Source: Anthoceros angustus
Taxonomy: Eukaryota > Plantae > Anthocerotophyta
NCBI GenBank assembly: GCA_010909165.1
Contig: VJWM01000044.1
Coordinates: 1,736,001-1,800,000 of the forward strand
Direction of reading: 5' to 3'
DNA: 64,000 bases
This document shows, in pieces, positions 4,790 to 38,111 of this stretch. How positions within the stretch are numbered: position 1 is the stretch's first letter; each line of letters starts with the position of its first letter. The position numbers and the translations under genes were made by a program. The notes beneath the pieces are model-generated. The model worked only from the letters and a program-made list of their open reading frames with translations, was not told the DNA's origin and ran no database searches.

Positions 4790-5850
4790 CGGCGGATGTC
4801 TCGAGTCGCCGTGCGGCGCCATGGCGGCGCCATGGCGGCGCCATGGCGGCGCCCCAAGGCCCTAAAGCGCGGTGATGTCTCGAGTCGCCGTGCGGCGCCC
4901 GACACGTTGCTTTATGCGGTGATGTCTCGAGTCGAGCCCTCCACCGCGAAAAAGGAGCCGCATGGCGGCACCATATTGTCTGTGGTGAAGGGTACTGCAT
5001 GGCGGCGCCCCAAGTGACAAAGGGATGTCGCCGTGCCTGGCGCCATTTTTGTGCCGTGGAGGGCTCTGGGATGGCCTTGCACTCGAATGGCGACGCCCAA
5101 GGCCCTAAAGCGCGGTGAACTACGGTGCTTTGTGTCGGAGAGGCGGCCATGGCGGCGCCATGCACTCCACATCGAGGGCGCGCATGCCGGCGCCCTCGTG
5201 TCGGAGAGGCGCCATGGCGGCGCCATGCACTCCACCTGAGGCGCGCATGCCGCGCCCCAAATGGAGTGCACGATAGATGGCGACGCCCAAGGCCCTAAAG
5301 CGCGGTGAACTACGGTGCTTTGTTGTGTATGAGATGAGGAAGCTTGCGCCTCTTTGCACTTCAGCTGCATGCCCGCCCTCCAACCTACTTATAAGGTTCA
5401 CTCCAGTGATGGAGGGGCATGTTGGCCCGCCGTGGTCCGGAATGCACGGGTTGGGTTCTTGCCGTAACATTAACTTCGCAGGAGCTGTCGATTGTATGCA
5501 AAATGTCACTATGCATTTGGACCGTGGAATAATAGGCAGCAGATGCGTATGTCCTAGTTTCGATCTCGTTTCAATGCACGACACTCGATCTTCCCAAATA
5601 GCTCTGTATGCAAAGTTATTGAATTTCGGTGCCCACAAGTGACAAAGGGATGTCGCTGCGTGCGCCGTTTTGTGCCGTGGAGGGCTCGGGATGGCCTTGC
5701 ACTGAATGGCGACGAGGCCGGCAGCGCCTCTTTGTCGAGAGGGCCATGGCGGCGCCATGCACTCCACTCGAGGGCGCATGCCGCGCCCCAAATGTGGAGT
5801 GCACGATAGGGCATGGCGACGCCCAAGGCCCTAAAGCGCGGTGAACTACG
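4790..5850. repeat. GC-rich degenerate repeat cluster: 11-bp gcggcgccatg tandem units plus 4x cccaaggccctaaagcgcggtga
   Basis: Motif visible near 4853, 5096, 5286 and 5822; 4812-4852 is about (gcggcgccatg)x3.5. Confidence 0.8.
5340..5640 (-). CDS. Putative small antisense ORF/exon nested in the element A transposase insert (second noisy copy ~5890-6140)
   Basis: CIQST...LEGG aligns without gaps over 43 aa to the equivalent antisense frame in element B. Confidence 0.45.
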
Positions 5851-8800: not shown

Positions 8801-9260
8801 ACCCTTATTTTCCGCCGTCACTTAATCCCAAACATGCCGCTTTGATAACCATCTTAAACCCGGATCCACGATATAGACCCTGCACCGCCCATGTATATTC
8901 ACCGCTTCAAATATTACGTTTCGTCCCTCCCAAATTACATCTTCTTCCTAGCTTGTGGGGCAAGTACCATGTTGCCCCTTCCTTCTACTCCGCGGGGCGG
9001 GGCCCTGATTCCTCTTGTCATGCAGGCAATCGCGCCCCTTCCGCGTGCTCAAGCGTCCCATTTTCCAACCTCCGCCGCCCGGCCGCGCTCCTTCTATAAG
9101 CATCCTACCGCGGTAGTCTGGCAGACTACCGGGGTAGGCTGACTACCTACCATGGTAGTCTAGTCCCCATCTCTCTTCCTTCCTTCCTCCTCATCGGTGA
9201 TGTCTCCTGGGGTTGAGATCCTCTTTGCTCCTTCCCTGCTGTTTGGTTTGTCCATACCTA

Positions 9261-10879
9261 TCATGGAGCATTTTCTTCAAAGGACCTTCCCCCCATTTGC
9301 CGACCGATGTTGCCACTAACTCCTTCGAGCCTTCTTCGAGTTGGCCCGGGCTCTTCCCTTATTCGTGGGGTGAGGGAACTTCTCACCCCTCCCCCCTCCT
9401 CGGCGGGTCGGACCCCGCCCTCGATCTCTTCCACCGGTGGGGCTGCTTCTCCCACCGCCTCGCCTCCTTCTCCAGGGGGTATGCCACCGGACCCCCCGGC
9501 TCCTTCATCCGCAGCCGTGCCGTTAGGACCCGACTCCCCATCAGGCCCCTCGCTGCGGTACTGCCCTACCCGGTGATGCAGCGGACTACGTGGGAAATGT
9601 AGCCTACCACGGACGTCTGGTGGTCACCTACCGTGGTAGGGTGACCCCCTATGAGGGCGGGCTGTCCCTCCTCCTTGCTTTCCGTGCCATCTTCCTTCTT
9701 GGGCGCCGTTTCTCCTCCGTCCTCCGACTCTCCAGACTCCTCGGAGTCCATGTCACTTGTGGCCTCATCAAAGTTTGAGGCCTCCGGTTGCACCTGCTGC
9801 AACTCCTTCCTATCATCATCATGAGGACCTATTGTCCTCCTCTTGGCCAAACGCAACACTTCGTTGTTGGCCTTCAATATCCTGTTGTGAAGATGGGCGC
9901 CCAGACTATGATATTGCATTTGGAGATCATCCAACTCCGTGGGCCACTCTCCATCTTCACACCTACTCTTGTAGGCATCCCTTGAGGTGGTCAATTCTCC
10001 CGCCTTCACATGGAGGGTCACATTCTCCTCCCGTGCTTCCCTCAGCTGGTTGGCCAACTTCGCTTGAAGGGCATAATCCGCCCAAAACCTTCGTTTCCTC
10101 AACACCAGCATTCTATGCACCACCTTCTTGTGATGCTCTTCTTCCTAGGACCTCCTCCTCTCCAAGTCCCCTAGTTGCTGAGCAAGCCCTTCCCTCTCCG
10201 CTTGCCAAGCACTCTTCTCGAGCTCCAACTCCTGCAGTTGCTGGTCTTGAGCTTCGAGCTCCGCGCGCTTCTCCTCCAAATTATACCGGGTTCTTCGCAA
10301 TTCTTCTTCCATGTCCCGGATCTTGATGGCTTGAGTAGCCATAACTTGTTCTTGCGCATCCACTTGCTGGACCGCCCGCTTTTCTCGTCCTAGAGCCTCA
10401 ACCTCGCTCTTCCTCTCCTGCTCTAGGTGGGCAAAGTGCTCCTCCGCCTTTTGCCTCCATGAGTCCCTTTGGGTGGTGGCTCGAATAGCCCTCTCCTCCG
10501 TTTGGGACAGTTTTCCCTCCAGGACCTTCTCCGCCCGCCGTTGATCCACAAGGTCGCGCTGGAGTTTCCCCACAGCCTTTTCCAACTTGGCTGCCTTCTC
10601 ATCAGACTCCATGGCCTCCAATTGCCATTTGGTCCCTGCTCTTCTCTCAGTCATCTCTTGGGCCTTGTTCGCCCGGACTTCCTCTTGACAGGCCCATAAG
10701 GAGGCTGCTAGGTCTCTAGCGCCCTTCGAATCCACACGGCTGAGTGCCTCATAAGCACTCATCAAATCTCCTAGGGGCCCAAATTCTGCCCCCGCCGGCC
10801 TCCTGTTGGAAATTTCCATCCTTCCCACACTCCTTGGGCCATCTCGCGGCGTGAGGCCCTCGTGACCGCCGCCTCCCAC
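9261..10879 (-). pseudogene. Coiled-coil accessory ORF of an LTR-retrotransposon-like remnant
   Basis: Consecutive same-strand E/K/R/Q-rich heptad ORFs (10145-10879, 9566-10123). No RT or integrase is seen, so the retro assignment is inference. Confidence 0.45.
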
Positions 10880-11047
10880 CGCCTCCTACCGCTGGTGATG
10901 GTGGTCCTGGCACCGCCCGCCTCGTACGCCCTTCCTTCCTCTTCCCCTACCCCAGGGGCAGCTTATTCGGCGTGGGGTGCTTGCTCACGTAGGTCAACTT
11001 GTCACAGTAGCCCCTATCACGTAGGTGTTGTGCTACCGATAACATGA

Positions 11048-11069
11048 TAATCTTGGAAGGGGTTAATAT
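11048..11069. repeat. Left terminal inverted repeat of element B (duplicated at 12319-12339)
   Basis: taatcttggaaggggttaatat is the reverse complement of 29146-29166 apart from one homopolymer base. Confidence 0.7.
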
Positions 11070-11281
11070 ACAAACCCCTTCCGCTGAAACCCCTTCATAA
11101 AAAGACTCGTTGGAAATGCAAAATACGCCGAATCCTCCGTCAACAGGTACATGCTAAATACGAAGGGAAAAAACATTGATATTTCACAATTCATAAAACA
11201 AGAGGGCTTCTTGGCGGCTGGCGGCCGCCAATATCCTTGCCCACTATGCTTTGACACAAGTAATGAAAGAAAATCCTAATA

Positions 11282-11960
11282 TCACGTTTCAAAACCCCTT
11301 CCGTCCCTCGAATATAGTCTTTCCTCTACAAAGATCCTCAGTGACGATCGAGACTCACGGCGCTTGGGTGGCTTCAATCTAAAACAAGCTGCCAGTTGCG
11401 CATGCTCCAATTCTACGCCGGTTGCCACCGCCAGTGGCCTTCGCTTCATCATCTTCTGCGTTGTCGCCTCCCCTTGTCGCCACCACTCCCATCGCACATG
11501 ATCCGTGGTTTGTTGTCCTTCCTCTAGCAAGTCCCTGCTTTGCGTTTTCATCCTCCTTGCACTAAGTGGAACCACCGAGCTTCGAACAATTTTTTCGCTA
11601 ATACAAACTTCTTTAGCCTGACCAGGCCGCCTCCGGTGGGCCTCGAATGTGAGCTCCTCTTTCCACTGCAAAACCTCGAAACCATGTATGCGTTGTGGGA
11701 TATAACCAGACAATGAGGTCACCTCTATTGCAATAGAATTGCGCCCGAAGCAATCTGCTGTTGTTGTCCCACTTCGCGCAACCATCCGTAATCCAATCTC
11801 CTTCTTCGAGAATGTTTTGATGAATTTCATCATCAACCCGAGAGGTCTTTGGTAGGCACACCACCATTTTGTCTTGAGACATGTACACCGCTTCTTCACC
11901 ATATCATGTGCAATCACGGATCGTCCATTGTTAAAAGTCCTCGTAATATTGGGCGTCATA
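11282..11960 (-). pseudogene. Duplicated C-terminal half of the amino-DNA methyltransferase
   Basis: YQRPLGLMMKFIKTFSKK / GDWITDGCA / SGTTTADCFGRNSIAIE; part of the ~10663-11960 / ~11960-13220 tandem duplication. Confidence 0.75.
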
Positions 11961-12556
11961 GCCTTGTTCGCCGGACTTCCTCGACAGCCCATAAGGAGGC
12001 TGCTAGGTCTCTAGCGCCTTCGAATCCACACGGCCGAGTGCCTCATAGCACTCATCAAATCTCCTAGGGGCCCACACCGCCTCCTCCTGGAAATTTCCAT
12101 CCTTCCCACACTCCTTGGGCCATCTCGCGGCCGCCGGCCGCCTTCCTTCCTCTCCGCCTGGGCCAGATGGTGGTCTGGCACCGCCTGCTGCCCTCAGCCC
12201 TTCTTCCTTCCTCTTCCTACCGGGGCAGCTTGCTCACCTGGGTGGGGTGCTCACCACGTGGTGAACTCGTCAGTGGTAGCTGCCACTCTACGTAGGTGTT
12301 GTGCCACTGATAACATGATAATCTTGGAAGGGGTTAATACAAACCCCTTCCGCACACAAATCAAACCCCTTCATAAAAAGACTGCTCGAAATGCAAAATA
12401 CGTCGAATCCTCCGTCAACAAAGACCATGCTAAATACGAAGGGAAAAAACATTGATATTTCACAATTCATAAAACAAAGAGGGCTTTCTGGCCGGGCGGC
12501 CCAGAGTATCCTTGCCTACGCTATGCTTTGACAAGTAATGAAAGAAAATCCTGATA

Positions 12557-13560
12557 TCACGTTTCAAAACCCCTCTTCCGTCCCTCGAATATAGTCTTTC
12601 CTCTACAAAGATCCTCAAAGTGACGATCCGAGACTCATCTTGGGTGGCTTCAATCTAAAACAATCGCTGTGTTGCATGTTCCCAATTCCCATCGCCGGCT
12701 ACTGGCCTTCGCTTCATCATCTTCTGTCGCCTGCCCTTGTCGCCACCACTCCTGCATCGCACATGATCCGTGGTTTGTTGTCCTTCCTCTAGCAAGTCCC
12801 TGCTTATGCTTTCATCCTTCTTGCACTAAGTGGAACCACGAGCCAACAATTTTTTCGCTAATACAAACTTCTTTAGCCAATCAGGCCGCTCCTCTCGTGG
12901 GCCTCGAATGTGAGCTCCTCTTTCCAGCAAAACCTCGAAACCATGTATGCGTTGTAGGGATATAACCAGACAATGGAGGTCGCCTCTATTGCAATAGAAT
13001 TGCGTAAAGCCGTTGTTGTCCCACTTCGCAACCATCCGTAATCCAATCTCCTTCTTCGAGAATGTTTTGATGAATTTCATCATCAACCCGAGAGGTCTTT
13101 GGTAGGGGCACACCACCATTTTGTCTTGAGACATGTACACCTGCTTCTTCACCACAGTATCATGTGCAATCACGGATCGTCCATTGTTAAAAGTCCCCTG
13201 CGTAATATTGGGCGTCATAGCCGCCCTTGCCTTCGAGCTGCCTTCCTTCACACACCAAGCAACTGTTATGTACTCCACTGTCTCAAATCCACCCCTGTCA
13301 TTACTCATGTTTGTTTTGTCCCAAACGAAGGACACCATTCCACCCTTGCCACATAATCCACGCATGCACTCTCTCACAAGGTGAGCTTCTTCCACTCCGT
13401 GCATGACAATGAGCCTGAATTCTTCCGCCGCCTTCTCTCGGAAGCTTTGGAAAATCGTGTTCATCATGCCCGCATCCAACCGACTATCCATAGGACCAAT
13501 GTCAAAGCCTCTTGGGACATCCATAACCGAAGGGTATAAGCCAATCAAGGAATCCGCATC
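12557..13560 (-). CDS. Beta-class amino-DNA methyltransferase domain (N6_N4_Mtase-like)
   Basis: Motif IV-like MDVPRG, then FVWDKTN, VEYITVAW, CPYQRPLGLMMKFIKTFS (cf. HPTQKP..L...I...S), GDWITDGCA(G)SGTT (SAM-binding motif I) and GRNSIAIE. Order IV...I defines the beta class. Confidence 0.8.
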
Positions 13561-14659
13561 TCCATAATGTTTCTTTTTCCACTTGATAGTAACACTCTTT
13601 CTCGCACTCGAACAGGAACAAGGTCAAATCTTGTCAACATTGCACGCTGCTCATCCTCAAGACTCTTCCGGTTGTTAATCTCAAATATGAAGTTCTTGAA
13701 ATCCTCCAGCTTTTGCAAATTCTCCACATCCTTTATTTCTGAACGCCGTGAAAGAAAAACGTTAGGCGAGGACACCACATTCCTATTGTATTCAAACAAG
13801 CGGATGATGACGAAGGAGGGTGTGAAAGACGCCGACGCCCTTCACACCTCCATCGACAAATTTGGTTGCTGTGCCAGGGGCGCCGGCCGGCGCCGGCGCC
13901 GCCGGCCGGCGCCGCCGGCCGGCGCCGCCGGTAGGTAGAGCAGGCGCGGGCGCCGCCCGCATATGTGCGGATAAGATGGGAGGGCGCCGGCCGCCTCCCC
14001 ACTATCGTGCCATTCTCTCGAGAGCGTGGCGGCGCCGCCACCGGCGCCAATGCAAAACGAAAAACCAAAGCGACTCATTGTCAGTGGTGACGGATCTCAC
14101 CTTCCCAGCAAAAGCCGTTTGAAATCGAGCAATCATGTCGTCCGTTGAGTGTAGAGGATATTCCTTCCTCACTTCCTCGAAAGATGAGCACTCCAGATGT
14201 TTAGCCATGGCCACTTGAATAACATGCAGTTTCTTTCTTGAAGTAATTTCGTCCTCCATTCCTTTGAGATCGAGGATGCTCGCCTTCCCCTTGCCGTGAC
14301 AAGAATCTGCTGCCCACATTCACCCACTGGTATACCCTGGAATGATTTCCAGGGTTTCGCGAGCATGTCTTTCGGCTTGAAATACATTGTTTCCACGTGT
14401 TTGGGATCATCTGTGACTTTCCTTTTTCCCTTCCCTTTCTTGCTGGTGCCAGCAGGTATGTGCTTCTTCTGCTCTGGTAACTCGCCTGCTTCCCACTTTG
14501 AAAAGATCTTATCAATATTATCCCATACCTTGCCTCCCCGCCGCGATGCAAGATGTGTGTCCTGTTGTCCACTTTGTTCCTTGTACACGTCATCTTCGCG
14601 CCTTCATCATCTTCAATTAATCCAAGAACCTTATAAAGATTGAACTTCCATGACATGGT

Positions 14660-15060
14660 CATCGCACTCCATCCCGACGCGCAATAAGAAGCTCATCTCG
14701 TAAATATCTTACATTCAATAAAAGACATTTTCTTCCGCTTGTCGGACATTGTGTTATGGTCGGTTGCAAGAACTCTCATCTCGTGCACCGTAAGCCCAGT
14801 ATACATGCGCTTCAACATATTGAAAACGGACTTCCCGAGCAATATCCGCCAAGTGCTTCATAGCGATATGTGTGGTTCCCCAAGTACACCCATAATATAT
14901 TTCTTGGCCCGACCGCCACCAACTTGCTAATATCGTTGCACTCCCGGGTCAATCATGCATGAATGGCGAACCCTTCTTCAATCCTTCCTTGAATAACTCG
15001 GCTAGGTAGTTTGACCATGCCTCGTCCACCCTCGATTTGGGCATCCGGTGTAATAAAAGA
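14660..15060 (-). CDS. ParB/Sulfiredoxin-like domain upstream of the MTase in the same ORF (frameshifted)
   Basis: Reconstructed RVDEAWSNYL..F..G...PF.CMIDP...LWVYLGNHT..AMKHL...YTGLTVHEMRVLATDHNTMS...MSFIEC; GNH...HN signature. Confidence 0.6.
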
Positions 15061-18000
15061 TCTTCAAATTCTCAAGCTTTACCAAGATCGCCTCGAACAA
15101 CTTTCTTGCATAGGCGAGTCCCCGATTATTGTCAATGGGTCCGATTCCGGATAGCATCTTCAAGTCTTTCCTCATCATCCGCACATGACCATATGTTATC
15201 TGGTGGGCTTCACTCACGCTTTCCTTCTGGATTTCTTCTTTCTCTTCCCCTGTGGAGCCTCGCTATGTGAGCGACTGGTATGCCCTGCGGCGTGCCCACC
15301 ATGCCTTGCTCTCCCACTCGAGTCCCTGTCTCCATACTCTCGGATCGGCGGACACGAGGTGCCTCAATAGAACCGACTGCCCGCCCACCGCCACCGTCTC
15401 TTCCGCAACAATTGTGCAGTCCAATCGGGGCCGCCCCAACCCTTCGGTGCCTTGGGAACCCGAAACCGCTTGGGGTCCGTGTAACGGTCTCAAGACTCGG
15501 AGGCGCCGGCCGCCTCACCCTCCTCCTCGCAGATACCGACTGGGTACCTCCATGGAGGAGCCGGAAAAGGAATGTCCGAACGGAGCATCCTTCCATCCTC
15601 GCCTCCGAAAGTCGTCATCGTCGGAGTGGCCAAGGACGTCGGGTATACACCCATCCTCCTCATCGATGGGCCGAGCTCACTAGCGCACTCGCTCGTGAGC
15701 CCATCATGCACATTCGTCGGCCGGGCTCGACTGCGTTGTGACATTTCCTCCTATCTTTGGATGACGGATTCGGTAATCTTCCGCATATGGTCGTAATTAG
15801 TGCTCTAGCTTCGAGCATCCCGCAAAACAAAAAAGGATTGAGGAAAGGCAAGATAGACAAGTCATGGAAACCAACATCACGATTTGCATCGCTTGAAAAC
15901 CTTATTCCAAAGTTTTACTTACAGCTATCGACGATAGCATTTCAATCCTCCACTGTTTGAAGGATCGCACTTCTTGCTTTGGAAGCCATGTAGGTGACCT
16001 CATAAGCCTTGTACATGGTTTCATCTTCGCTTATCCGATCAAATACCAAAGGCTTTGTTGTGCACAAGATCTCAAACATGTGCTCGTCCATCCATATCCA
16101 TCGCCCATAGAACCCACCACCCTTGCTCCGGTTTGGCAAGGCCCCTTGAACCCTACGACCCACGGTTTCAATAGAGGAGTCCAAAATTGTTCTCCTCCAA
16201 GGCTCCTCATCCCGTGTCAACATCCTCCTTCTCGAGCGTAACAGTGGCCTCCACCTTGCTCCCCAACCGAGATGGCAACAATATCCTCATAGTTAAATGG
16301 CGTTGGAATAGGCGCTGCACCGATTGCTGGGGGTCTCTTCCTCGGTCTCCTCCTCCTCAGCCTTCTCCTTCGCTAGCCGGCCTTATGTTAGGCTGCCCGA
16401 TTTCCCATGCCCAATTGACAAATTACCTGTGGGGTGCTTGATGGCTGGTTGTATCTGCGCCTCCACCGGAGGTAGGCGGCCTTCTCCGACATCCACACCA
16501 AATTCCGCCGCATCCTTCTTCCCGGCCGGGATTTCTTGGTTTTGGGCATCGGGTCGATGGCGCCTCGTTCTCCACGTTCCTTCCTACTTCGCCTTCCGCT
16601 TGCCATCCTCAAGAGATTAGATACAATCGCCATAGGAAGCCAAAAAGAATTCAGCGCCCCAACCCTTCGCATGTGCCTTGGGAACCCGAAACCGCGTGTA
16701 ACCAGTCTCAAGACTTATCGAGGAGGGGCGCCGGCCGCGCCTCACCCTCCTCTCGCAGATACAACATGGGTACCTCCATGGAGGGAAAAGGAATGTCCAA
16801 CGGAGCATCCTTCCATCCTCTCGCCTCCGAAAGTCGCCATCGTCGAGTGGCCAGGGACGTATACACCCATCCTCCTCATCGATGGGCCGAGCTCACTAGC
16901 CGCATCGGCGGCCGTGAGCCCATCATGCACATTCGTCTGGGCTCGACTGCCGTGACATTTCCTCCCGCCGGATGACGGATTCGGTAATCTTCCCGCATAT
17001 GGTCGTAATTAGTGCTCTAGCTTGCGAGCATCCCGCAAATGTAAAAGGATTGAGGAAAGGCAAGATAGAAGGCACAAGTCATGGAAACCAACATACGATT
17101 TGCATCATCGCTTGAAAACCTTATTCCAAAGTTTTACTTACAGCTATCGACGATAGCATTTCAATCCTCCACCAGTTTGAAGGATCGCACTTCTTGCTTT
17201 GGAAGCCATGTAGGTGACCTCATAAGCCTTGTACATGGTTTCATCTTCGCTTATCCGATCAAATACCAAAGGCTTTGTTGTGCACGATCAAACACATGTG
17301 CTCGCCCATCCATATCCACGCCGCCATAGAACCCACTTGCTCGGTTTGGCAAGGCCCCTTGAACCCTACGACCACGGTTTCAATAGAGGAGTCCAAAATT
17401 GTTCTCCTCAAGGCTCCTCATCCTGTGTCAACATCCTTCCTTCTCGAGCGTAATGGCCTCCACCTTGCTCCCCAACCGACGATGGCAACAATATCCTCAT
17501 AGTTAAATGGCGTTGGAATAGGCGCTGCAGATTGCCTGTGGGGTCTCTTCCTCGGTCTCCTCCCAGCCTTCTCCTTCGCTAGCCGGCCTTCCCGGATGTT
17601 AGGCTGCCCGATTTCCCATGCCCAATTGACAAATTACCTGTGGTGCTTGATGGCTGGTTGTATCTCGCCCTCCACCGGAGGTAGGCCGCGGCCTTCTCCG
17701 ACATCCACACCAAATTCCCGCCGCATCCTTCTTCCGCTGGCCGGGATTTCTTGGTTTTGGGCATCGGGTCGGGATGTTGCCTCGGTTCTCCACGTTCCTT
17801 CCTACTTCGCCTTCCGCTTGCCATCCTCAAGAGATTAGATACCGCCATAGGAAGCGCAATTCAAAGAAGGAATCCCGCACAACTTGAAGGAAATTTGCGA
17901 GCAGGAAGGGGAGGGCCATACCAAGACTATGTGAATCGCGCGAAGAGGAAATGGCGGAGGATCGCAGCGTGGAGAAGTCGCCGGGAGAGCCAAAAGTCCT

Positions 18001-18659
18001 TCACCGAGTTGGGCCGAGAGGCGCCGCCACCGCTCCGTCTGGGAAGAACTTGCTCGTCTCTCGGTTACTCTCCACTGAATCGAAGTATGACGCCTGCTCG
18101 GTCACGCCATACACATGTCTGGCAACCCTAACCATAAATGTCAATTAAGGTAATGCTTACATGGAAAACCATTTATAGGACCCTAAGTCAAAAGCCGTAC
18201 ATGTGAACCCCAATGCAGAAAACAATGAAGAGGCGGTGTGCACCGCCAAGTTCTACCGGTGAAGATCTTTCGGTTTATTTGCTCATAATGGCATTTCCAC
18301 CTTACCTTGATCGGTCGCCTATGTCATGGCATACCACGCCTGTGAAGAGTGAGGACCATATTTCGAGGTTAGAGGTGCGGAGTCCTCGTGCGGCGACAAT
18401 GTTGCGCCACACACACATCGCTTGTCGAAGAGGTCGAGTTTTTCGTCCACAAGTTCATTACTTCGCTTTGTGCGATCAAGGGGAACATGTACTTGAGAAC
18501 AAGTGTTGGGTTTGCATCTCTCCTCCTGCTCACCATGTAATGACGACATTGATGTTGTCGCAGCAGAATGGTGAGGAAGAGGGTCTTTTGATTTCGGATG
18601 GTAGGTGACTCTCTTGTGAGGAGCCAAGGATGGTCAGATTGAATGGGGCCCCGCGCCCT

Positions 18660-21600
18660 TCCGATCATGAGCAACGAAAACGAGTCCGAACTCCGAAGGT
18701 TAGTTTGCCTTCAACAAGAAACTTTTTGTGAAGACAATGTTGTGGCCGAATAGTCCACCCCATCCGTGGCGGATTCCATCTCATGCACACCGCACGTGGT
18801 ATTGCGGTAATGCTCGCCATCGACAAGCGCCCTCTCCGGCATTCCGCGTGGGGTGCCCATGACCCCGTGAACTTGAACTTATATCGCCATTGATGGGAAT
18901 CCGCATCCAGCGAAGACACGGAAGGAAGGGAGATGGGGTGCGAATCCCGTCGTGGTTTGTTCCGCCAAGGAGCGATGTGCGAGGATGACCGCAGGATCGA
19001 GTTCTTCCACAAGCAAATGATCCGTGGATCGAGGATGGGGATGATGACTTTGTTCACCCTCCGCTGGTGCATCCGGAACATTCCATCCCAAGCCTTTAAG
19101 TGAGACATTGATGACAACAAAGCTTTCGGACAAGCGTGACGGCAGCGGGTGTCTTTGCAAAAATGTGAATGGAGAAGGTGACGGCAGACTTTCTTAAACC
19201 GTGTTGCAACCAAATGTGCATGCAGAGGTTGACCAAGCAAGGCCTTGAGCAACGATATAGGTTCCTCACAATGTGCAAGAGCAAGAGACATTTCTTCAAA
19301 GCCTCGTACATCGGGACCCGAGTCAAACTAACAAAGAAAGAGTTTTACGCATGTTATGGGATCGGTTCCTACTGCGTGAAGGCCTTGAAGAGTATATTGT
19401 ATGGGGCAGACACGAGGAATCGAAAGGGAGGGTCATGAGGAATGCCCGTGGGATAGTGTTCGAACCAACCCAATTCATAAGTCCCGTCATGCACTTGGTG
19501 CTCTAGCGTGGATGGATAATGCTTTTCGCTTCATGGTGAAAGACTTCAACGTGTGTATAACCCGCCGACACCTATACAAAGCTGGAGATATGGTCATTGT
19601 ACAAACGGCGGTCAAAAGCTCGTCTGCGCAGACGACGTGGTTTTGAAGTTATGGAAATCTAACTTCAGAGTGAAGATTCCCAAATCCAACAGTTCTCGAC
19701 CGCTCAATATGTGAGGTTAAAGACCACCATTCGAATACAACTCGGAAGGTTGATCAAGGTAGATATCACTCTACCACTAGTACAACCCATCTGCCGGTGG
19801 GAGGAGTTTTTCGTGTTCATCCCATAGTTCGCCGAATGAGCACCGGATGGTCTTGAATGGGGCCCCGCCTTCCGATCATGAGCAACGAAAACGAGTCCGA
19901 ACTCCGGAAGGTTAGTTTGCCTTCAACAAGAAAGCGACTTGTTTGCGGTGAAGACAATGTTGTGGCGAATAGTCCACCCCATCCGTGGATTCCATCTCAT
20001 GCACACCGCAGTGGTATTGCGGTAATGCTCGCCATCGACAAGCGCCCTCTCCGGCATTCCGCGTGGGGTGCCCATGAACTTGAACTTATATCGCCATTGA
20101 TGGGAATCCGCATCCAGCGAAGACACCGGGAAGGAAGGGAGATGGGGTGCGAATCCCGTCGTGGTTTGTTCCGCCAAGGAGCGATGTGCGAGGATGACCG
20201 CAGGGGTGAGTTCTTCCACAAGCAAATGATCCGTGGATCGAGGATGGGGATGATGACTTTGTTCACCCTCCTCCTGGTGCATCGGAACATTCCATCCCAA
20301 GCCTTTAAGTGAGACATTGATGACAACAAAGCTTTCGGACAAGCGCAGCGGCGGCGGGGGGTGTCTTTGCAAAAATGAAGGAGAAGGTGACGGCAGACTT
20401 TCTTAAACCGTGTTGCAACCAAATGTGCATGCAGAGGTTGACCAAGCAAGGCCTTGAGCAACGATATAGGTTCCTCACAATGTGCAAGAGCAAGAGACAT
20501 TTCTTCAAAGCCTCGTACATCGGGACCCGAGTCAAACTAACAAAGAAAGAGTTTTTACGCATGTTATGGGATCGGTTCCTCTGCTACTGCGTGAAGGCCT
20601 TGAGAGTATATTGTATGGGGCACAACGATACGAGGCGAAAGGGAGGGTCATGAGGAATGCCCGTGGATAGTGTTCGAACCAACCCAATTCATAAGTCCCG
20701 TCATGCACTTGGTGCTCTAGCGTGGATGGATAATGCTTTTCGCTCATGGTGAAAGACTTCAACGTGCGGTGTATAACCCGACACCTATACAAATGGAGAT
20801 ATGGTCATTGTACAAACGGCGTGTCAAAAGCTCGTCTGCGTTTGGACGCGTGGTTTTGAAGTTATGGAAATCTAACTTCAGTGAAGATTCCCAAATCCAA
20901 CAGTTCTCGACCGCTCAATATGTGCGAGGTTAAAGACCACCATTCGAATACAACTCGGAAGGTTGATCAAGGTAGATATCACTCTACCACTAGTACAACC
21001 TGCTGGTGGGAGGAGTTTTTTCATCCCATAGTTCGCGAATGAGCGGTGGTATGCGGATGGTTCAAAAACTGAGTGAGTGGCGTGGCCGGCGCCCACCCCT
21101 GGATGACCGAATCAAGTTGCTCGAGTACCATGTTTGAAACTCGCAGTCCTTGTTCATGGATGGCCCCAGGTTGTAGGTTTGATTGGTCGAGTAGGGGGGC
21201 GCCGCGCCGGCGCCGGCCCCATCCACCTTCAAACTCGCCAACCATAATATATGACCTAGAAGGTGGACGTTTTGTAGATTTTAGATTGGGGAAGATGGTA
21301 AATGTATGTGTGAAGAGGTGATAGTCCACGACATCGGTTTGTTGTATGCAATGGGTTTCATGGATTCCGCCTTCGCTTGTGGTGTGGAAGAAGCGTGTTT
21401 GTATGTGTGAAATTGGGGAACGTGAAAACTTGGAAGGATGTGAACTTGAACTTATATGCCATTGATGGGAATCCGCATCCAGCGAAGACACCGGAAGGAA
21501 GGGAGATGGGGTGCGAATCCCCGTGGTTTGTTCCGCCAAGGAGCGATGAGGATGACCGCAGGATCGAGTTCTTCCACAAGCAAATGATCCGTGGATCGAG

Positions 21601-24600
21601 GATGGGGATGATGACTTTGTTCACCCTCCTTTGGTGCATCTGGAACATTCCATCCCAAGCCTTTAAGTGAGACATTGATGACAACAAAGCTCGGGACAAG
21701 CGCAGGCGACGGCGGGGTGTCTTTGCAAAAATGTGAATGGAGAAGGTGACGACTTTCTTAAACCGTGTTGCAACCAAATGTGCATGCAGAGGTTGACCAA
21801 GCAAGGCCTTGAGCAACGATATAGGTTCCTCACAATGTGCAAGAGCAAGAGACATTTCTTCAAAGCCTCGTACATCGGGACCCGAGTCAAACTAACAAAG
21901 AAAGAGTTTTTACGCATGTTATGGGATCGGTTCCTACTGTGAAGGCCTTGAAGAGTATATTGTATGGGGCACATACGAGGAATCGAAAGGGAGGGTCATG
22001 AGGAATGCCCGTGTGTGTTCGAACCAACCCAATTCATAAGTCCCGTCATGCACTTGGTGCTCTAGCGTGGATGGATAATGCTTTTCGCTTCATGGTGAAA
22101 AGACTTCAACGGCGTGTATAACACCGACACCTATACAAAGCGGAGATATGGTCATTGTACAAACGGCGTGTCAAAGCTCGTCCGCAGACGTGACGCGTGG
22201 TTTTGAAGTTATGGAAATCTAACTTCAGAGTGAAGATTCCCAAATCCAACAGTTCTCGACCGCTCAATATGTGCGGTTAAAGACCACCATTCGAATACAA
22301 CTCGGAAGGTTGATCAAGGTAGATATCACTCTACCACTAGTACAACCCATCTGCGGTGGGAGGAGTTTTCGTTCATCCCATAGTTCGCCGAATGAGCATG
22401 GCGATGGTTCGAAAACTGAGTGACGGGTGGGCGCCGGCCGGCGCCCACCCTCGGACCGACTGCTTGATCAAGTTGCGAGTACCATGTTGAAACTCAGTGT
22501 CCTTGTTCATGGATGGCCCCTGGTTGTAGGTTTGATTGGTCGAGGTTAGTGGGCGCCGCTGCCGGCCCCGGCCCCATCCACCTTCAAACTCGCCAACCAT
22601 AATATATGACCTAGAAGGTGGACGTTTTGTAGATTTTAGATTGGGGAAGATGGTAAATGTATGTGTGAAGAGGTGATAGTCCACGACATTTGTTGTATGC
22701 AATGGGTTTCATGGATTCTGTCTTCGCTTGTGGTGGAAGAAGCGTGTTTGTATGTGTGAAATTGGGGAACGTGAAAACTTGGAAGGATGTGAAACTTGGA
22801 ACGTGTTTGTGGCGGAAAAATATCGCCAGGAGGCACACCGCTGCAGGAGGAGCGGGAAAAATGGCAAAACACCGTGAAAAGAGTTACAGGAACCGGATAA
22901 GTACATGCTCCTCGCTATAGACGGAATGGACCAAGAAGACCGAGATTCCACACTTTCTGCGTTGGCCAAAGAATCTTGATGAGGACCGTGTATCTGCACG
23001 TAGTGGTTGCATGATCCACAATTATACAAAGCGGAGATATGGTCATTGTACAAGCGGCGTGTCAAAGCTCGTCTGCGGTTTGTGACGTCTGTGGTTTTGA
23101 AGTTATGGAAATCTAACTTCAGAGTGAAGATTCCCAAATCCAACAGTTCTCGACGCTCAATATGTCAGGTTAAAGACCACCATTCGAATACAACTCGGAA
23201 GGTTGATCAAGGTAGATATCACTCTACCACTAGTACAACCCATCTGCTGGGGAGGAGTTTTTGAGTTCATCCCATAGTTCGCGAATGAGCGGTGGTATGC
23301 GGATGGTTCGAAAACTGAGTGTCGGAGGGTGGCCGCCCCCGCCAGATCAGACACCGTTTAAGTTGCTCGAGTACCATGTTTGAAACTCGCAGTCCTTGTT
23401 CATGGATGGCCCACAGGTTGTAGGTTTGATTGGTCGAGTTTGTGCCGGCGCCGGCCGCGCCCCATCCACCTTCAAACTCGCCAACCATAATATATGACCT
23501 AGAAGGTGGACGTTTTGTAGATTTTAGATTGGGGAAGATGGTAAATGTATGTGTGAAGAGGTGATAGTCCACGACATCGGTTTGTTGTATGCAATGGGTT
23601 TCATGGATTACATCTTCGCTTGTGGTGTGGAAGAAGCGTGTTTGTATGTGTGAAATTGGGAGCGTGAAAACTTGGAAGGATGTGACACTTGGAGCGTGTT
23701 TGGTGTGGCGGAAAAATATCGGCCGCGTTAGAGGCACACCGTCGGAGGAGGCGGGAAAAATGGCAAAACACCGTGAAAAGAGTTCTGAGGGCGGATAAGT
23801 ACATGCTCCTCGCTATAGGCGGAATGGACGAAGCGAGATTCCACACTTTGCGTTGGCCAAAGAATCTTGATGAGGACCGTGTATCGTGCACGTAGTGGGT
23901 TGCATGATCCACAATTATACAAAGCGGAGATATGGTCATTGTACAAACGGGTGTCAAAGCTCGTCTGCGACGTGGTTTTTGAAGTTATGGAAATCTAACT
24001 TCAGAGTGAAGATTCCCAAATCCAACAGTTCTCGACCGCTCAATATGTCTGGTTAAAGACCACCATTCGAATACAACTCGGAAGGTTGATCAAGGTAGAT
24101 ATCACTCTACCACTAGTACAACCCATCCGCCGGAGGAGTTTTCGTGTTCATCCCATAGTTCGCCGAATGAGCATGGTATGCGGATGGTTCGAAAACTGAG
24201 TGTCGAGGGTGGCGCCCGCCGCGCCCACCCTCGATGATGACTGCTTGCTGGAGTACCATGTTTGAAACTCGCAGTCCTTGTTCATGGATGGCCCCTGGTT
24301 GTAGGTTTGATTGGTCGAGTTTAGGGCCGGGGCGCCGCCGGCCGGCCCCATCCACCTTCAAACTCGCCAACCATAATATATGACCTAGAAGGTGGACGTT
24401 TTGTAGATTTTAGATTGGGGAAGATGGTAAATGTATGTGAAGAGGTGATAGTCCACGACATCGGTTTGTTGTATGCAATGGGTTTCATGGATTACATCTT
24501 CGCTTGTGGTGTGGAAGAAGCGTGTTTGTATGTGTGAAATTGGGAACGTGAAAACTTGGAAGGATGTGACACTTGGAACGTGTTTGTGGAGAAAATATCA

Positions 24601-27600
24601 GCGTTAGAGGCACACCGCTGCAGGAGGAGCGGGGAAAAATGGCAAAACACCGTGAAAAGAGTTACAGGGAACCGGATAAGTACATGCTCCTCGCTATAGA
24701 CGGAATGGACCAGAAGAAGACTGAGATTCCACACTTTCTGCGTTGGCCAAAGAATCTTGATGAGGACTGCCGTGTATCTGTGCACGTAGTGGGTTGCATG
24801 ATCCACAATTATACGTACGCAGCAAGAGTGTTTTTGCACTATGCCAATTTGAGGAACGATGCGAATCTGACAATCAGGATTATTCAAGATGTTATTCTTA
24901 ATTATAAAGGAGTGCTACCCAAAGTGCTCTATTTGCAGCTTGACAACACTTGCCGGGAAAACAAGAACCAGCTGTTGTTTGCGTATTTGAACATGCTAGT
25001 TGATATGGGAACTTTTCAGAAGGTGAAGGTTGGGTTCCTCCTTGTTGGGCACACTCACGACCAAATCGACCAAATGTTCTCTTGCTTTTCCAAAAGCTTG
25101 AAGCACAAGGAGGCACACACTCTTCCGCGTTGGCCGACATCTTGGTTCATGCATACACGCCTACACCGGAGATCAAAGTTTTGCAGGAGGTCCGGACTTC
25201 ATATGTATGGCCGATTAGACAAGGCGATGGTCGGCATATTCATCGGCGGTGAGAAAATTGAACAACTTATCTTTCCAGCACGTTTAAAATCACCAGAGAA
25301 GACAAACCGCGTAATGGGATGAATTAGGAGCAAGCAATATTCGACATCGATGTATTGGGAAACCGAAGCCGGGTTGGAGTTTTGAAATTTGTCCCTCCAA
25401 CGATATAATACACGGCCCTCCGGCTCGAGACAAGAAAGGGACGTCGGCGGGGTTATCTCCGACAAGGAGTGGCACATTTGAGAGCGGTCTGCCGAGCGCG
25501 CCATATGTGACGGGAGAATATGGATGGTGGGAAGCATTCAGGTGGACCAAGAAGAAATCGCAATAATCGTGGAGAACAACATTGGGCTCGCACTAGAAGT
25601 GCCGTGGAAATGGTTCTCTCGGGCGAATCGGAAGAAACAGACAACCACTCCAAGTTCCCATGAAGCTATCCTAGAGGAGGCGTTGCTAAGAGAACTCCCC
25701 AACGGATATGTACTTGGGGCCTTACCAAGGCAGCAGCAGAAATGGCACGCTTGCATGGAGATGTAAAAGACATAAAGGAAGGATGTTCATCGATTCTTGT
25801 ACCGATACGCATAATCGGCCTTTCCGGATTGGGAAAGTTAATCGTGAGGTTGGATGTGGAAGAGCCTCATTTCTGGTTCATCGTACAGATCGAGCACAGA
25901 TGCATATGAAGGCGTATACGTGGAAGAATATGTGATTCCGCACCCATCCACCGAGATTGGGATTGGAAGGAAAAAGGGTGGGAAGGCAAATTTCAAGAAT
26001 GTTCAAGAAGTCTTCATCAATAAAACGTCATCTTGTATTATGGGTTCGGTTTGAATTCCGTAAACATCTCTATTCCATTGACAAAAAGCGATCGAGGATA
26101 AGTTGAATGAATTGCGGGGCTTCATCGAGCCACCAAAGTGCACCGAAGATAGTGACGAAGACGGTGAGGACATCGGGCCCTTGGACATGGAAGGTGTCAA
26201 TTCGGGAGATGAGTGAAAAGATGTATGAAGTGGAGGCAAAACATCGGTGGACATCGGTGAGACAAGAGGGTTTACTCATCCGCGTGTGTGACCGCCAAGT
26301 GTTAGGCTCAAAGTGGGAGCTCGCGTTAGTGATAGGGAATCACCTGTTGGTGCTATCATTCGGTGTTGGAAGTTGAAGAAGTTGGAGTCACTTCCGGCCG
26401 TAGGTTGCGGCGACATGGACAAATGGCGGTGGCCGTGGCGCCCGCCATTTTTCACCATCCTCTAGTAGCATGGAAACCGTTTTCCGCACCAGTCCTGCGT
26501 ATTGTACATTTTGTTCGTCAGACTGTATATAACCCATCCGTACGCATGCCTAAATCCTACATCGTGGAAACCCGATAGTTGAAGGCGCCGGCCCACCGGC
26601 GCCCTGAGCGGCCCCTTCTTGCCAAAAACAACAGACTATGGGTTCTGGACGGACGGTTCGGAAAGAAGCACCATTCTTTACCAATGATGACTGTGAAGAT
26701 TGCCTGCAATGTCTTCAAAAGACCTTGTTTATTTAGACTATGCCTCATCAACCCGTTCCCTTTTAGTCCTTCCGGTACTTATGGTAAGCAAGCATGGGTC
26801 GTATTATGCCAAATTCGATGGCGAACTCGCTAACCCTTTGTGTGATGGAACCGGATAAGTACATGCTCCTCGCTATAGACGGAATGGACCAAGAAGACCG
26901 AGATTCCACACTTTTGGCCAAAGAATCTTGATGAGGACCGTGTATCCGCACGTAGTGGGTTGCATGATCCACAATTATACGACGCAGAAGAGTGTTTTGC
27001 ACTATGCCAATTTGAGGAACGATGCGAATCGACAATCGGATTATTCAAGATGTTATTCTTAATTATAAAGGAGTGCTACCCAAAGTGCTCTATTTGCAGC
27101 TTGACAACACTTGGGAAAACAAGAACCAGCTGTTGTTTGCGATTTGAACATGCTAGTTGATATGGGAACTTTTCAAGGTGAAGGTTGGGTTCCTCCTTGT
27201 TGGGCACACTCACGACCAAATCGACCAAATGTTCTCTTGCTTTTCCAAAAGCTTGAAGCACAAGGAGGCACACACTCTTCCGCTTGGCGACATCTTGGTT
27301 CATGCATACACGCCTACACCGGAGATCAAAGTTTTGGGAGGTCCGGACTTCATATGTATGGTTAGACAAGGCGATGGTCGCCAGCATATTCATCGGCGGT
27401 GAGAAAATTGAACAACTTATCTTTCCAGCACCAGTTTAAAATCACCAGAGAAGACAAACCAGACGGTGAGTAATTAGGAGCAAGCAATATTCGACATCGA
27501 TGTATTGGGAAACCGAAGCCGGGTTGGAGTTTTTGAAATTTGTCCCCTCCAACGACATAACAGCTGCACGGCTGTCGGCCCTCCGGGCTCGAGACAAGAA

Positions 27601-28400
27601 AGGGACGTCGGCAGGGTTATCTCCGACGGAAGGAGTGGCACATTTGAGAGCGGTCTGCGAGCCATATGTGACCGGGAGAATATGGATGGTGGGAAGCATT
27701 CAGGTGGACCAAGAAGAAATCGCAATAATCGTGGAGAACAATATTGGGCTCGCACTAGAAGAGCCGTGGAAATGGTTCTCTCGGGCAGAATCGGAAGAAA
27801 CAGCACAACCACTCCAAGTTCCCGATGAAGCTATCCTAGAGGAGGCGCTAAGAGAACTCCCCAACGGATATGTACTTGGGGCCTTACCGGCTTGGGAAGG
27901 CGCAGCAGGAAATGGCACGTTTGCATGGAGATGTAAAAGACATAAAGGAAGGGATGTTCATCGCAGTACCTTGTACCAGCGATACGCATAATCGGCCTTT
28001 CTGGATTGGGAAAGTTAATCAGGTGAGGTTGGATGTGGAAGAGCCTCATTTCCTGGTTCACTGGTACAGGACTGAGCACACAGATGCATATGAAGGCATA
28101 TACGTGGAAGAATATGTGATTCCAGACCCATCCACTGAGACAGATGGGATTGGAAGGAAAAAGGGTGGGAAGGCAAATTTCCCGAAGAATGTTCAAGAAG
28201 TCTTCATCAATAAAACCGTCATCTTGTATTATGGGTTCAGTTTGAATTCCCGTAAACATCTCTATTCCATTGACAAAAAGCGATCGTGATAAGTTGAATG
28301 AATTGCGGGGCTTCATCGAGCCACCAAAGTGCACCGTAAGATAGTGACGGTGAGGACATCGGGCCCTTGGACATGGAAGGTGTCAATTCGGGAGATGAGT
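18660..28400 (+). pseudogene. Sola2-like / DUF7869-type transposase of element B, in 5-6 overlapping partial tandem copies; best intact segment 24573-25322
   Basis: KPCCNQMC; EFYACYGIG; KIPKSN; LLAIDGMDQ; PKVLYLQLDNTCRENKNQ; KVGFLLVGHTHDQIDQMFS; C-terminal RPFWIGKV...LVHWY. Confidence 0.8.
21190..21450 (-). CDS. Putative antisense ORF nested in the element B transposase insert (copies ~22560-22800, ~23450-23690, ~24340-24570)
   Basis: THCIQQTDVVDYHLFTHTFTIFPNLKSTKRPPSRSYIMVGEFEGGWG is open in several copies and homologous to element A 5340-5640. Confidence 0.45.
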
Positions 28401-29145
28401 GAAAAGATGTATGAAGTGGAGGCAAACAGCGGTGGACATCGGTAGACAAGAGGGTTTACTCTCTGACTGTCGAAGTGTGCTGACCGCCAAGTGTTAGGGT
28501 CAAAGTGGGGAGCTCGCGTTAGTGATAGGGAATGACCTGTTGGTGCTATCATTCGGTGACTGGAAGTTGAAGAAGTAGGAGTCACTTCCCCTGGCCGTAG
28601 GTTGCAGTGTCGGCGACATGGACAAATGGCGGGGTGGGCGGCGCCCGCCATTTTTCACCATCCTTAGTAGCATGGAAACCGCTTTTCCGCACTTATTGTA
28701 CATTTTGTTCGCACAGATATAACCCATCCGACGCATGCCTAAATCCTACATCGTGGAAACCCGATAGTTGCCCACCGGCGCCTGGCCCTTCTTGCCAAAA
28801 ACAAAAGACTATGGGTTCGACGGTTCGGAAAGAAGCACCATTCTTTACCAATGATGACTGTGAAGATTGCCCGCAATGTCTTCAAAAGACCTTGTTTATT
28901 TAGGCGGCCTCATCAACCCGTTCCTTTTAGTCCTTCCGGTACTTATGGTAAGCAAGCATGGGTCGATTATGCCAAATTCGATGGCGAACCACGCCTAACC
29001 CTTTGTGTGATGGAGACACCGCTCGGACGTCAATTTCATCCCTTATCGACCCTTATTTTCAGGCCTTTTTGGGCGATGTTGCCCAAAGCGAATGCGACCC
29101 ATCCCAAACCCCCTTCCGACGATATTTGGATGAAAACCCCATCAG

Positions 29146-29166
29146 ATATTAACCCTTCCAAGATTA
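29146..29166. repeat. Right terminal inverted repeat of element B
   Basis: atattaacccttccaagatta, inverse of 11048-11069. Confidence 0.7.
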
Positions 29167-29219: not shown

Positions 29220-30930
29220 CTATCGGGGTGGTGCCTCTTTCATAGGCACCCACGAAATGGTGGGGACTCCTCCCACCCTTGGGATCGTCACCCCTACTGT
29301 GGTAGTCCCCTCATAGACTACCACTTGGCCCTCTATGGCCGGATCTTGCTCTTCTTGTGGGGGAAAGGCCTCCCACTCCGGCAACCTTGTTGCCTCCGCC
29401 ACCTCCGCTCTCGGTCCTGGGGTCCTTGTGGAGGTTTGTCCTCCCATGGTCTTCCTCAGCGCAAAGGGTAGAGGCCTCTCTAAGCTTGGCTGGAGGTGGA
29501 TGATCTCAAAAGGATGCCAAGCATCCTCAAGCTCTTTGCTAGTCAAGAGCTCCTCCGTTTCCCACAAGTGCACCAAATAGGTGCTGAGGTAACATGGCCT
29601 TGGCCAAATAGGTGCTAAGGAGCTTCTCCCTGTGATGGATGTAGGCCTCATACATGACAGTGCCCCAATCCGGCTTGGCTCCTCGCGAGATCTTCCACAA
29701 AAACTGGAGGAAGTTGGTGCTGAAATAAGAGGTCCGTTGGTAATTCACCAATCCCAACACAATTTTGGCAAAGAGCCGCCACTTCAGCTCCTTGATGCTG
29801 TCTGTCTTCCAGCCATTCTTGGCGTGGGCCTTCACTCCTCCGTCCATCATATCGAGGACCTCCTGCGGAAATCCTCTTCCCTCCATTTGTCCTCTCGAGG
29901 AGAGCAATTCCTGAGCTCTCCTCCTCCGGTCTACCATACACTTGGCGAATGCTCCGGACTGTCCAGCAGCACGGATCCGTCCGAGCATTCCTCTCCGGCA
30001 ACGCGGCAAGGGCTGCTTCCGATTGATGGAGGTTGATGTAACACTCCTCAATCAACTCCAAATTGGTGTAGGCCCATTGGCGGCCATACACCCATCCCAA
30101 TTGGATGTTCTCCTCTTCCGCCCATTGCCTGAAATCTACCAAATCGCGGGGGTTGAGCTGCCCGCAAAACAGGTGAACTGGGGCATTTCAAAATCCTCTC
30201 CTCCTGGCGGCGCAGCCTCCGCTGCCGCCTTCTTTCCCCTTCCTCCTCGTGAGGAGGAACCCTTGGCAGGCGGTTCCTTCCCCTTGCCCTTCCCTGCTTG
30301 AGGCATGGCGGCGTCTTTCTTCCCAAGTGCTTCTAGGGGAGTGAATTACTTCCCAAGTGATGTCAGAGGAGGAAGCTACTTCCCAATTGGCAACCTCAAG
30401 CTTCGTTCCCAAGTGCTTCTCCTCCTCACGACTGGCAGCAAAACCTCTCCTGAGACACAATTCCAACGTTAGGCTTGGTGATGCTTCCCAGTTGTCGCCA
30501 ATTTTCCTCAGGAGCTCTCCTTCCAGGGCAAGGCGCCGCCGGTGAGGTGGTCGCGGCGTTCTTCTTCGCGAAATCCCTTCCACAATTACGAGGTTATAGG
30601 TGTTCCAACCTAGCGCCTCCGACGTGGCGCCCGCCCAAGACTCAGTTCGCCTCCCTCCACTCAACGCGTGAGCTCAGAAGGTTCCTTCACGTCGCGTGGC
30701 TCCTGGCGGCTTCTTCTCTTCTCCTTCCTTCGCCTCGCGCTCTTCATTCGTGGTTTCCCTTCCTCCTCGTGAGGAGGAAGCTACTTCCCAATTGGATGTT
30801 CTCCTCTTGTGCTCAGTCTTGTTCGTGGTGGTGGTGGCGAGGACGATGGCGGTTTCTCCTTCTCCTCTTGCGCTTACGCTCCAGCTCCAGTCTCAGCTCT
30901 TCGCGAAGTGAGGACGCCACAATTCGGAGA
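29220..30930 (-). pseudogene. Accessory ORF of an LTR-retrotransposon-like remnant
   Basis: Frameshifted chain VDFRQWAEEE...KNGWKT...KIVLGLVNYQRTSYF...PDWG...STYLVHLW, resembling extra ORFs of plant Ty3/gypsy elements; same strand and composition as 9261-10879. Confidence 0.45.
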
Positions 30931-37396: not shown

Positions 37397-38111
37397 ACCT
37401 GCCGGAAATCGAGAAGCAGCATTGAGGATTCTGTCTTCGAGGAATGTGGAGCTCGTTCTCGGCTACTCTGTGACCAGTATCAGCAACAGTGCAGCACACA
37501 ACGGTGTAAAATCCAGTCCCGGATCTGTTGTGCTTAACCTGAAAGGAACAAAGGAGAAGGGCGAGGAGCGGAAGCTACATGCTGATCTGGTGCTCTGGAC
37601 GGTGGGCACCAAGGCACTTGTTCCACCCGGAGACGTAGAAACCCAGCCTTCTTTTCCTCTGAATGGGCGAGGCCAAGCGGACACGGACAGCACTCTGAGG
37701 GTGAAGGGTCATCCTCGTGTTTTTGCCATCGGAGACTCAGCTGGTGCCAAGGACAGTTCTGGAAACCTGCTCCCAACAACCGCTCAGGTGGCTTTCCAAC
37801 AAGCTGAATACGCAGGCTGGAATCTGTGGGCTGCAATCAACGACAGACCACTTCGTGCGTTCAAATACACACATCTAGGAGAGATGATGACCCTCGGGAA
37901 GTACGATGGAGCAGTGACACCAAGCTTTCCAGATGGTCTGACGCTTGATGGTGTGGTCGGCCATTCAGCCAGGAAACTTGCTTACTTGTATCGGCTTCCG
38001 ACCAATGAGCACAAGTTGAAAGTCGGACTTAGCTGGTTCGCCAAGACGGCCATAGACTCCATCTCTTTTGCCCAAGACACCCTTGCCAACATCCTAGCCC
38101 CACCACGATAG
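35407..38111 (+). CDS. NDC1: Type II NAD(P)H dehydrogenase C1 (plastid/mitochondrial); 5' half duplicated in this assembly
   Basis: WTDSKRPRICILGGGFGGLYTAL.LESLVWP, LVDQSDRFVFKPLLYELLS, VVGSGYSGVELAAT, FAIGDS, TAQVAFQQA, RKLAYLYRLPT; N-terminal transit-like peptide. Confidence 0.92.

Follow-up and report, generated by a model that had tools for sequence, protein, structure and literature searches.

A predicted Sola1-type transposon of Anthoceros angustus carries a divergent amino-methyltransferase gene with an altered motif IV

Can a DNA transposon of a land plant carry its own prokaryote-type amino-methyltransferase, and what might the enzyme do for the element? The question is raised by positions 11048–29166 of a 64,000-nucleotide stretch of Anthoceros angustus DNA (assembly GCA_010909165.1, contig VJWM01000044.1, forward-strand positions 1,736,001–1,800,000), referred to here as the window. 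An initial annotation, made from the sequence alone, described this region as a unit bounded by terminal inverted repeats (TIRs) in which a beta-class amino-methyltransferase gene is divergent from a transposase gene. Our analysis upholds both parts of this description: the region is a genuine cut-and-paste TIR transposon in a land-plant genome, and it contains the two genes in divergent orientation. The window is nuclear DNA of a plant and contains intact long open reading frames (ORFs) for PLS-type PPR proteins at 51–61 kb.

The ends of the element are marked by a TIR of about 21 nt. Positions 11048 or 12319 with 29166 form the top-scoring pair of ends, the TIR motif is found nowhere else in the window, and short-read coverage is almost nil in the flank outside the TIR. 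The 18.1 kb span that was taken as the size of the element is inflated by seven head-to-tail duplications, 0.9–2.2 kb each and 84–94% identical, between 10.6 and 29 kb. With every duplicated block collapsed to a single copy, the element measures about 9.1 kb, near the 8.5 kb of its relatives in the liverwort Riccia sorocarpa. The features of the element, from left to right, are as follows.

10662–13222, no strand: head-to-tail duplication (10662–11963 with 11961–13222, 84% identity) of the left flank, TIR and methyltransferase 3' half; probable assembly artefact
11048–11069, plus: left TIR, first assembled copy, matching the reverse complement of 29146–29166 (14 nt exact; 21/22 nt with one indel)
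11669–11883, minus: duplicate copy of the methyltransferase C-terminal half (PYQRP region, motif I), from frameshift-aware alignment to the relative P0115
12319–12339, plus: left TIR, second assembled copy
12928–13527, minus: beta-class amino-methyltransferase domain, with motif IV DVPR at 13521–13510 and motif I near 13040–13010; family HMM E value 5e-17
13870–14045, no strand: GC-rich palindrome array with core GGCGCCGGCCG, probably intronic; 37 GC hexamers versus 6.6 expected
14032–14804, minus: helical mid-portion of the accessory protein, aligning to a Chara homologue
14805–15250, minus: probable ParB/sulfiredoxin-like N-terminal domain, in frameshifted pieces, with an LG(G)NH-type motif near 14860–14890
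15250–17860, minus: N-terminal, low-complexity stretch of the accessory gene, holding the duplication 15432–16640 with 16655–17855
18620–24570, plus: transposase N-terminal exons (Cys-rich PCCNQMC, CxxC-type) and a probable palindrome-bearing intron, with several artefact duplications
24573–25322, plus: Sola1-type DDD transposase core (DUF7869), duplicated at 26847–27460
27470–28289, plus: transposase C-terminal region with a small beta-rich domain, also at 25400–26080
29146–29166, minus: right TIR

The transposase core is open over 249 codons and matches DUF7869 (Pfam PF25273) with an E value of 5.4e-43. The motifs on which the transposase had been recognized are all present in this ORF: the first Asp of IDGMDQ at 24699, the Asp of QLDN at 24942, and GHTHDQID at 25047–25070. 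Homologues number 111 and include proteins from Riccia, Heterosigma and Branchiostoma. The three acidic motifs and the N-terminal Cys clusters are the same in the published transposase of Sola1-1_Ec32 from the brown alga Ectocarpus, whose best Repbase match is Sola1-1_PPa (PMC12477816). Because this motif set is shared, as judged by motif comparison and not by Repbase alignment, the predicted transposase places the element in Sola1 and not in Sola2, the label it had been given. Neither a Sola2-type transposase nor the G-rich termini (GGCGG/GRG) given in the available part of the Sola2 source were found; the window termini start with TAATC or ATC. The C-terminal region of the transposase matches no named family in Pfam, DUF1918 being reached only at an E value of 0.025. 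Within it, residues encoded by 27870–28289 form a beta-rich domain with the pattern FWIGKV..VHWY, which by eye is like BAH/Tudor-type barrels.

Positions 1–9000 of the window hold a further, diverged member of this family. Its DUF7869 transposase (about 4000–8050, plus strand) is approximately 69% identical in the core at the nucleotide level and keeps the beta-rich domain, and the Cys motifs encoded by 18620–24570 of the main element resemble those of both this copy and Ectocarpus Sola1-1. The divergent gene runs off the left edge of the window and matches the N-terminal part of the main element weakly. This copy has its own palindrome array, of the CATGGCGGCGCCATG type, at 4800–5850.

The minus-strand gene, termed here the accessory gene, is not the single large ORF first reported but a series of frameshifted pieces with probable introns. 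A direct Pfam scan of its methyltransferase pieces (ORF 12826–13548) gave no match to PF01555, because a frameshift splits off motif I. With this ORF as the phmmer query, full-domain relatives were found at E values of 2e-7 to 9e-4 (P0113–P0115 from run SRR33208241 and P0117 from Chara braunii), all above the PF01555 threshold. The family HMM also gives weak matches at three pieces upstream of the methyltransferase, up to 14806. In the window, motif IV (DVPRG), WxKxN, PYQRP and motif I (DGCA-GSGTT) become readable once frameshifts are allowed for in the alignment, with 0 stops. The S-adenosylmethionine (SAM)-binding motif I spans a frame break that is partly filled by short-read contigs; the relatives have DGCSGSG or DMCSGSG. 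In the duplicate copy at 11669–11883, these contigs add a letter at 11775 and at 11804.

The family profile aligns end to end with M1.HpyAVI, M.BceJIV and CcrM in the motif order IV–TRD–I (TRD, target recognition domain), and the predicted structures of P0117 and P0114 match CcrM and M.BceJIV with Z scores of 19.6–20.9 (20.9 for M.BceJIV). Fold (as modelled for the relatives), motif order and 16–29% identity are shared with these enzymes and with phage DLPY enzymes; the window protein differs from them in having Arg as the fourth residue of motif IV. In the tree, the transposon-type methyltransferases group apart from the prokaryotic sequences, of which six were included. Phage tblastn matches (24–29%) are confined to the methyltransferase domain; the ParB part had no counterpart among the phage records. 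A scan of viral contigs with the family alignment gave no match, and a metagenome scan returned generic prokaryotic DPPY/DPPF enzymes only.

Upstream of the methyltransferase domain, the middle region aligns to the Chara homologue in a frameshift-aware comparison with scores of 91 and 69.5, against shuffled maxima of 55.5 and 39, and tblastn with the N-terminal part of L002 reaches 14032–14804 with an E value of 4e-12. For the N-terminal domain, the model of the Chara homologue gives middling Z scores to PadC (8.5), Srx (7.8) and KorB (7.3), and an Atlas ParB_N match at 0.93 adds support; the ParB region returned nothing from PDB sequences or from Pfam. The LG(G)NH ParB-type motif can be read in the window across a frameshift near 14870, and the window–Chara alignment begins only at 14804.

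A repeated palindrome particular to each family is concentrated within the accessory gene and near the ends of the element: CCATGA-N3-TCATGG in Riccia, TATAGGCCTATA in Chara and GGCGCCGGCCG in the window element. The Riccia arrays sit at the place equivalent to the window array. Further sites of the GGCGCCGGCCG type are found near 15500, 21085, 21205, 26437/28640 and 28775.

The initial annotation would have been refuted had methyltransferase and transposase not been linked within common termini at other loci; in Riccia they are so linked. Two loci (L010 and L011) were picked by the DUF7869 protein alone, and in both a ParB-methyltransferase gene lies 3–5 kb upstream on the opposite strand. 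Both genes are enclosed by AACAG..CTGTT termini flanked by 4-bp target site duplications (TSDs), TGAG in L010 (5856–14378) and TTGT in L011. At a third Riccia locus, picked by the methyltransferase, the transposase 5' region is found upstream and divergent. In Chara there are at least 12 further copies of the ParB-methyltransferase gene; TIR searches in these loci were uninformative owing to N-gaps and satellites.

Three side observations concern these loci. A 40-nt TIR of the GAGG type was considered as the end of the Riccia L010 element and rejected, being part of a miniature inverted-repeat transposable element (MITE) around it; the Sola copy lies within this short MITE of the Mutator-like (MULE) kind, which has GAGG..CCTC 40-nt TIRs and a 9–10-bp TSD (L010 5816–5855 and 14379–14646). 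The 1825-residue model of Chara P0117 (L001 10001–39538) consists of two separate ParB-methyltransferase copies joined over 21 kb of gaps, probably an annotation fusion. Upstream of the methyltransferase P0114, a duplicated ORF (L003 3361–5091) has no family match, and no transposase is present within 6.5 kb.

Is this gene combination new? The initial annotation knew of no element with the same gene set. However, Ectocarpus Sola1-1_Ec32 has the same set in the same orientation: a Sola1 transposase and an opposite-strand gene of 1104 residues with ParB-like and N4C/N6A methyltransferase domains (Genome Biol 2025, PMC12477816), for which a role in self-methylation, or self-marking, has already been proposed (PMC12477816). 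The two elements share the transposase motif set and the opposite-strand gene with its C-terminal methyltransferase. They differ in that the brown algal element is 21.5 kb long with a 282-bp TIR, AACCG termini and a 4-bp TSD, whereas the land-plant element is about 9 kb long with a TIR of about 21 nt. The relatives in Riccia (L010, L011, L018; unannotated elements) and Chara (P0117–P0129, multicopy genes) have a homologous transposase, middle region and methyltransferase and carry element-specific palindrome arrays; the Riccia elements also share the divergent layout and, at about 8.5 kb, the size. They are unlike the window element in motif IV (DVPY in Riccia, DFPY/DLPY in Chara), in their palindromes and termini and, in Chara, in a transposase that, where seen, lies downstream on the same strand. 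More distant are PAG2 and PAG3, accessory genes of the Plavaka (EnSpm) elements of Bostrychia (bioRxiv 10.1101/2025.02.11.637652). They too put a PF01555 methylase and ParB-like domains on a transposon, but one of another transposase superfamily, and the two domains are in different genes: one joins the methylase to SET, the other joins ParB to a 2OG oxygenase. No paper on the land-plant or Chara members, or on DxPR, was found in the literature searched, outside which most subscription papers lie. The design is therefore already known, and what is new is the land-plant host range and the altered motif IV.

This comparison bears on whether the methyltransferase gene belongs to the element in any functional sense. 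It could be passive cargo captured in the manner of Pack-type elements, or its product could act on RNA or another substrate instead of DNA. Beta-class folds have repeatedly been turned to RNA in eukaryotes, and phage ParB-methyltransferase loci have been discussed as sources of eukaryotic methyltransferases (PMC4738411); related methyltransferase domains, as in PAG2, ride on other transposon superfamilies. Yet the divergent two-gene layout is common to a brown alga, a liverwort and the window plant, with transposases about 50% identical, which argues for long co-retention. Moreover, no host parent gene of such a kind was found, and the fusion to a ParB-like domain indicates DNA. We consider both readings, cargo and a non-DNA substrate, improbable.

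The window protein departs from the motif IV consensus, (D/N/S)-P-P-(Y/F/W). Its DVPR is paralleled by DLPR in P0113–P0115, as against DVPY in Riccia, DFPY/DLPY in Chara and DLPY in some phages. Identity among the four DxPR proteins is only 25–50%, and they group in a single clade (90/94, or 86 when the motif is masked). Since the arginine is found throughout a clade of diverged proteins, it is not a lesion of the window copy. DPPR is also motif IV of the TrmA/RlmD m5U RNA enzymes, which require a cysteine in motif VI. A reading of DxPR as TrmA/RlmD-type was ruled out, as a histidine occupies the position aligned to that cysteine.

The aromatic fourth residue of motif IV normally stacks on the target base (PMC7544214). 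Its absence makes catalysis in the Arg-type lineage doubtful, with motif I kept. From these motifs, it is fairly probable that the Arg-type protein would be weak or non-catalytic; an active enzyme with an altered pocket ranks below this and is a tentative reading. A more specific form of the latter is that the DVPR protein writes N6-methyladenine (6mA), or N4-methylcytosine (4mC), on the element's own palindromes or TIRs, thereby sustaining transcription or scheduling transposition to follow replication, with Arg in place of the stacking residue. The diverged DxPR proteins retain motif I, WxKxN and PYQ(K/R)P, the fold is intact in the structural model (Z of 20.9 to M.BceJIV), the methyltransferase domain has no in-frame stops, and frame breaks are mended in short-read contigs. 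The consensus of motif IV, however, requires Y, F or W for base stacking, the inactive subunits METTL14 and MTA9 are marked by eroded motifs, and the branch leading to the window sequence is long (1.3–1.4 changes per column, partly sequencing error). On balance, this specific form appears unlikely.

The many frameshifts raise a further question, whether the window copy is a dead fossil, whose frameshifts and tandem duplications arose by true mutation and whose two genes can no longer be expressed. The frameshifts themselves, the lack of a TSD and the heavy CHG methylation suggested below would fit such a fossil. Other observations point away from this. Duplicate blocks differ chiefly by indels of 1–2 nt, 3–6 events per 100 nt and exceeding substitutions (77 indel events versus 44 substitutions in 10662–13222). 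Of the differences, 42% adjoin a CWG; the figure for identical windows is 4%. Among the substitutions, CCG/CTG and CAG/CGG swaps occur most often. Similar duplications are found in the rest of the window, and the catalytic transposase core is open. We infer a noisy long-read assembly whose methylated repeats were left unpolished; the duplications are probably long-read artefacts.

Short-read contigs of run X1 bear on the frameshifts. They cover the methyltransferase gene with 296 pieces, 121 of them at 99% or more; they match at 95–100% and insert or drop single letters at several frame breaks, reopening the frame at 11804, a break common to both duplicate copies, and at 14865. The element family is therefore multi-copy in the X1 sample, and at least some of the frameshifts are errors of assembly. 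X1 is possibly the source sample, and its contigs possibly come from other copies of the element, so they do not decide whether the window copy is alive or dead. That it is a fossil is a serious possibility, if a somewhat doubtful one.

The error pattern also speaks to host methylation. Repeats are poor in CWG, with observed/expected ratios of 0.36–0.73 versus 1.4–1.8 in genes (window 10662–29014), and the error signature at CWG suggests that the element itself may be CHG-methylated by the host. No escape from 5-methylcytosine (5mC) is therefore evident, and the proposed antagonism of 5mC silencing gains no support. High CpG together with low CWG was considered as a sign of 5mC escape and rejected: the copies differ by CTG/CCG and CAG/CGG swaps, and the Riccia and Chara copies are without the skew. 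The letters of the window palindromes may be distorted by CWG miscalls. More generally, base-calling errors at methylated CHG are likely; they would bias the calling of motifs, CpG and 'dead copies' in the repeats of this genome.

Based on these observations, we think it quite likely that the element represents a Sola1 lineage with a divergent accessory gene (ParB-like, helical and methyltransferase-fold regions), whose protein serves the element as a self-recognition or chromatin factor. The DDD transposase would excise and insert the element through its TIRs. We infer that the accessory protein binds the element's own palindromes, in a parS-like role. In Tyr-type members (Chara, Riccia), 6mA would be written on or near the palindromes, a prediction from their motifs that we hold to be just on the probable side; 6mA is favoured over 4mC because of the first Asp of motif IV and the best matches to adenine enzymes. 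In the Arg-type lineage (DVPR), a weak or non-catalytic DNA- and SAM-binding protein would have a binding or scaffold role.

Several observations weigh against this proposal. Around the window TIRs, no nearby offset yielded a 4-bp TSD, and in this noisy assembly TA alone fits. The ParB fold is seen in the model of the Chara homologue, not in the window protein. Of six Chara loci, two have a DUF7869 piece on the same strand, 7–10 kb downstream (one match is weak), and none was seen in the others, so the divergent layout does not hold everywhere. Each of the three DLPR contigs either is too short or shows no transposase. Run X2, guessed to be RNA, gave no coverage of the accessory gene. Finally, D-first motifs are no guarantee of adenine specificity, as M.BamHI illustrates.

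Could DN4MT1 of Marchantia and N4CMT of bdelloids, both host 4mC enzymes, have been domesticated from this element, a route that the initial annotation suggested for host amino-methyltransferases? These are likewise eukaryotic beta-class amino-methyltransferases of prokaryotic origin, N4CMT structures are among the matches, and liverworts carry the element. Unlike the accessory gene, they are host genes with demonstrated 4mC activity and no ParB domain. Both have (T)SPPY, as opposed to D-[VLF]-P-[YR] in the transposon family, and their match is weaker: N4CMT is reached at an E value of 2e-6 over about 55 C-terminal positions only, versus 1e-12 over the full length for bacterial adenine enzymes. 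Judged by these motifs and alignments, such an origin seems highly improbable.

Outside the element, minus-strand ORFs flank it on both sides (9566–10879, coiled-coil, on the left; 29220–30142, globular, on the right). Neither has a Pfam match, and they may be the two parts of a single retroelement accessory ORF that the insertion interrupted. Farther right, a pyridine nucleotide-disulphide oxidoreductase gene (35392–38111; Pyr_redox_2, E value 1.6e-38) lies in the region of a 1-kb tandem duplication, 98% identical (35362–37396), and another duplication, of 1.3 kb, is found at 40750–43435. At 49947–61415, a 5'-3' exonuclease gene (E value 1.6e-36) adjoins three long PLS-PPR ORFs, which are arranged both in tandem and as inverted copies.

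These results extend a one-paragraph observation in Ectocarpus to streptophytes and add family-specific palindromes and a conserved DxPR motif. The presence of 6mA and 4mC in land-plant DNA, and their writers, are contested, with the Marchantia sperm enzyme as the one clear case. Against this background, a multi-copy family of amino-methyltransferase transposons in Chara, Riccia and the window genome is a testable source, offering loci, candidate palindromes, and Tyr- and Arg-type proteins. A bolder idea, which we regard as rather unlikely, is that streptophyte Sola1 elements have a self-contained parS/ParB-like marking system, in which the accessory protein loads onto palindromes specific to the element and places an amino-methyl mark on nuclear DNA, with the DxPR clade acting through an arginine-based active site or as a reader. 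If true, no transposon-autonomous 6mA/4mC writer would have been shown in land plants before it, and the DxPR active site would be one previously undescribed.

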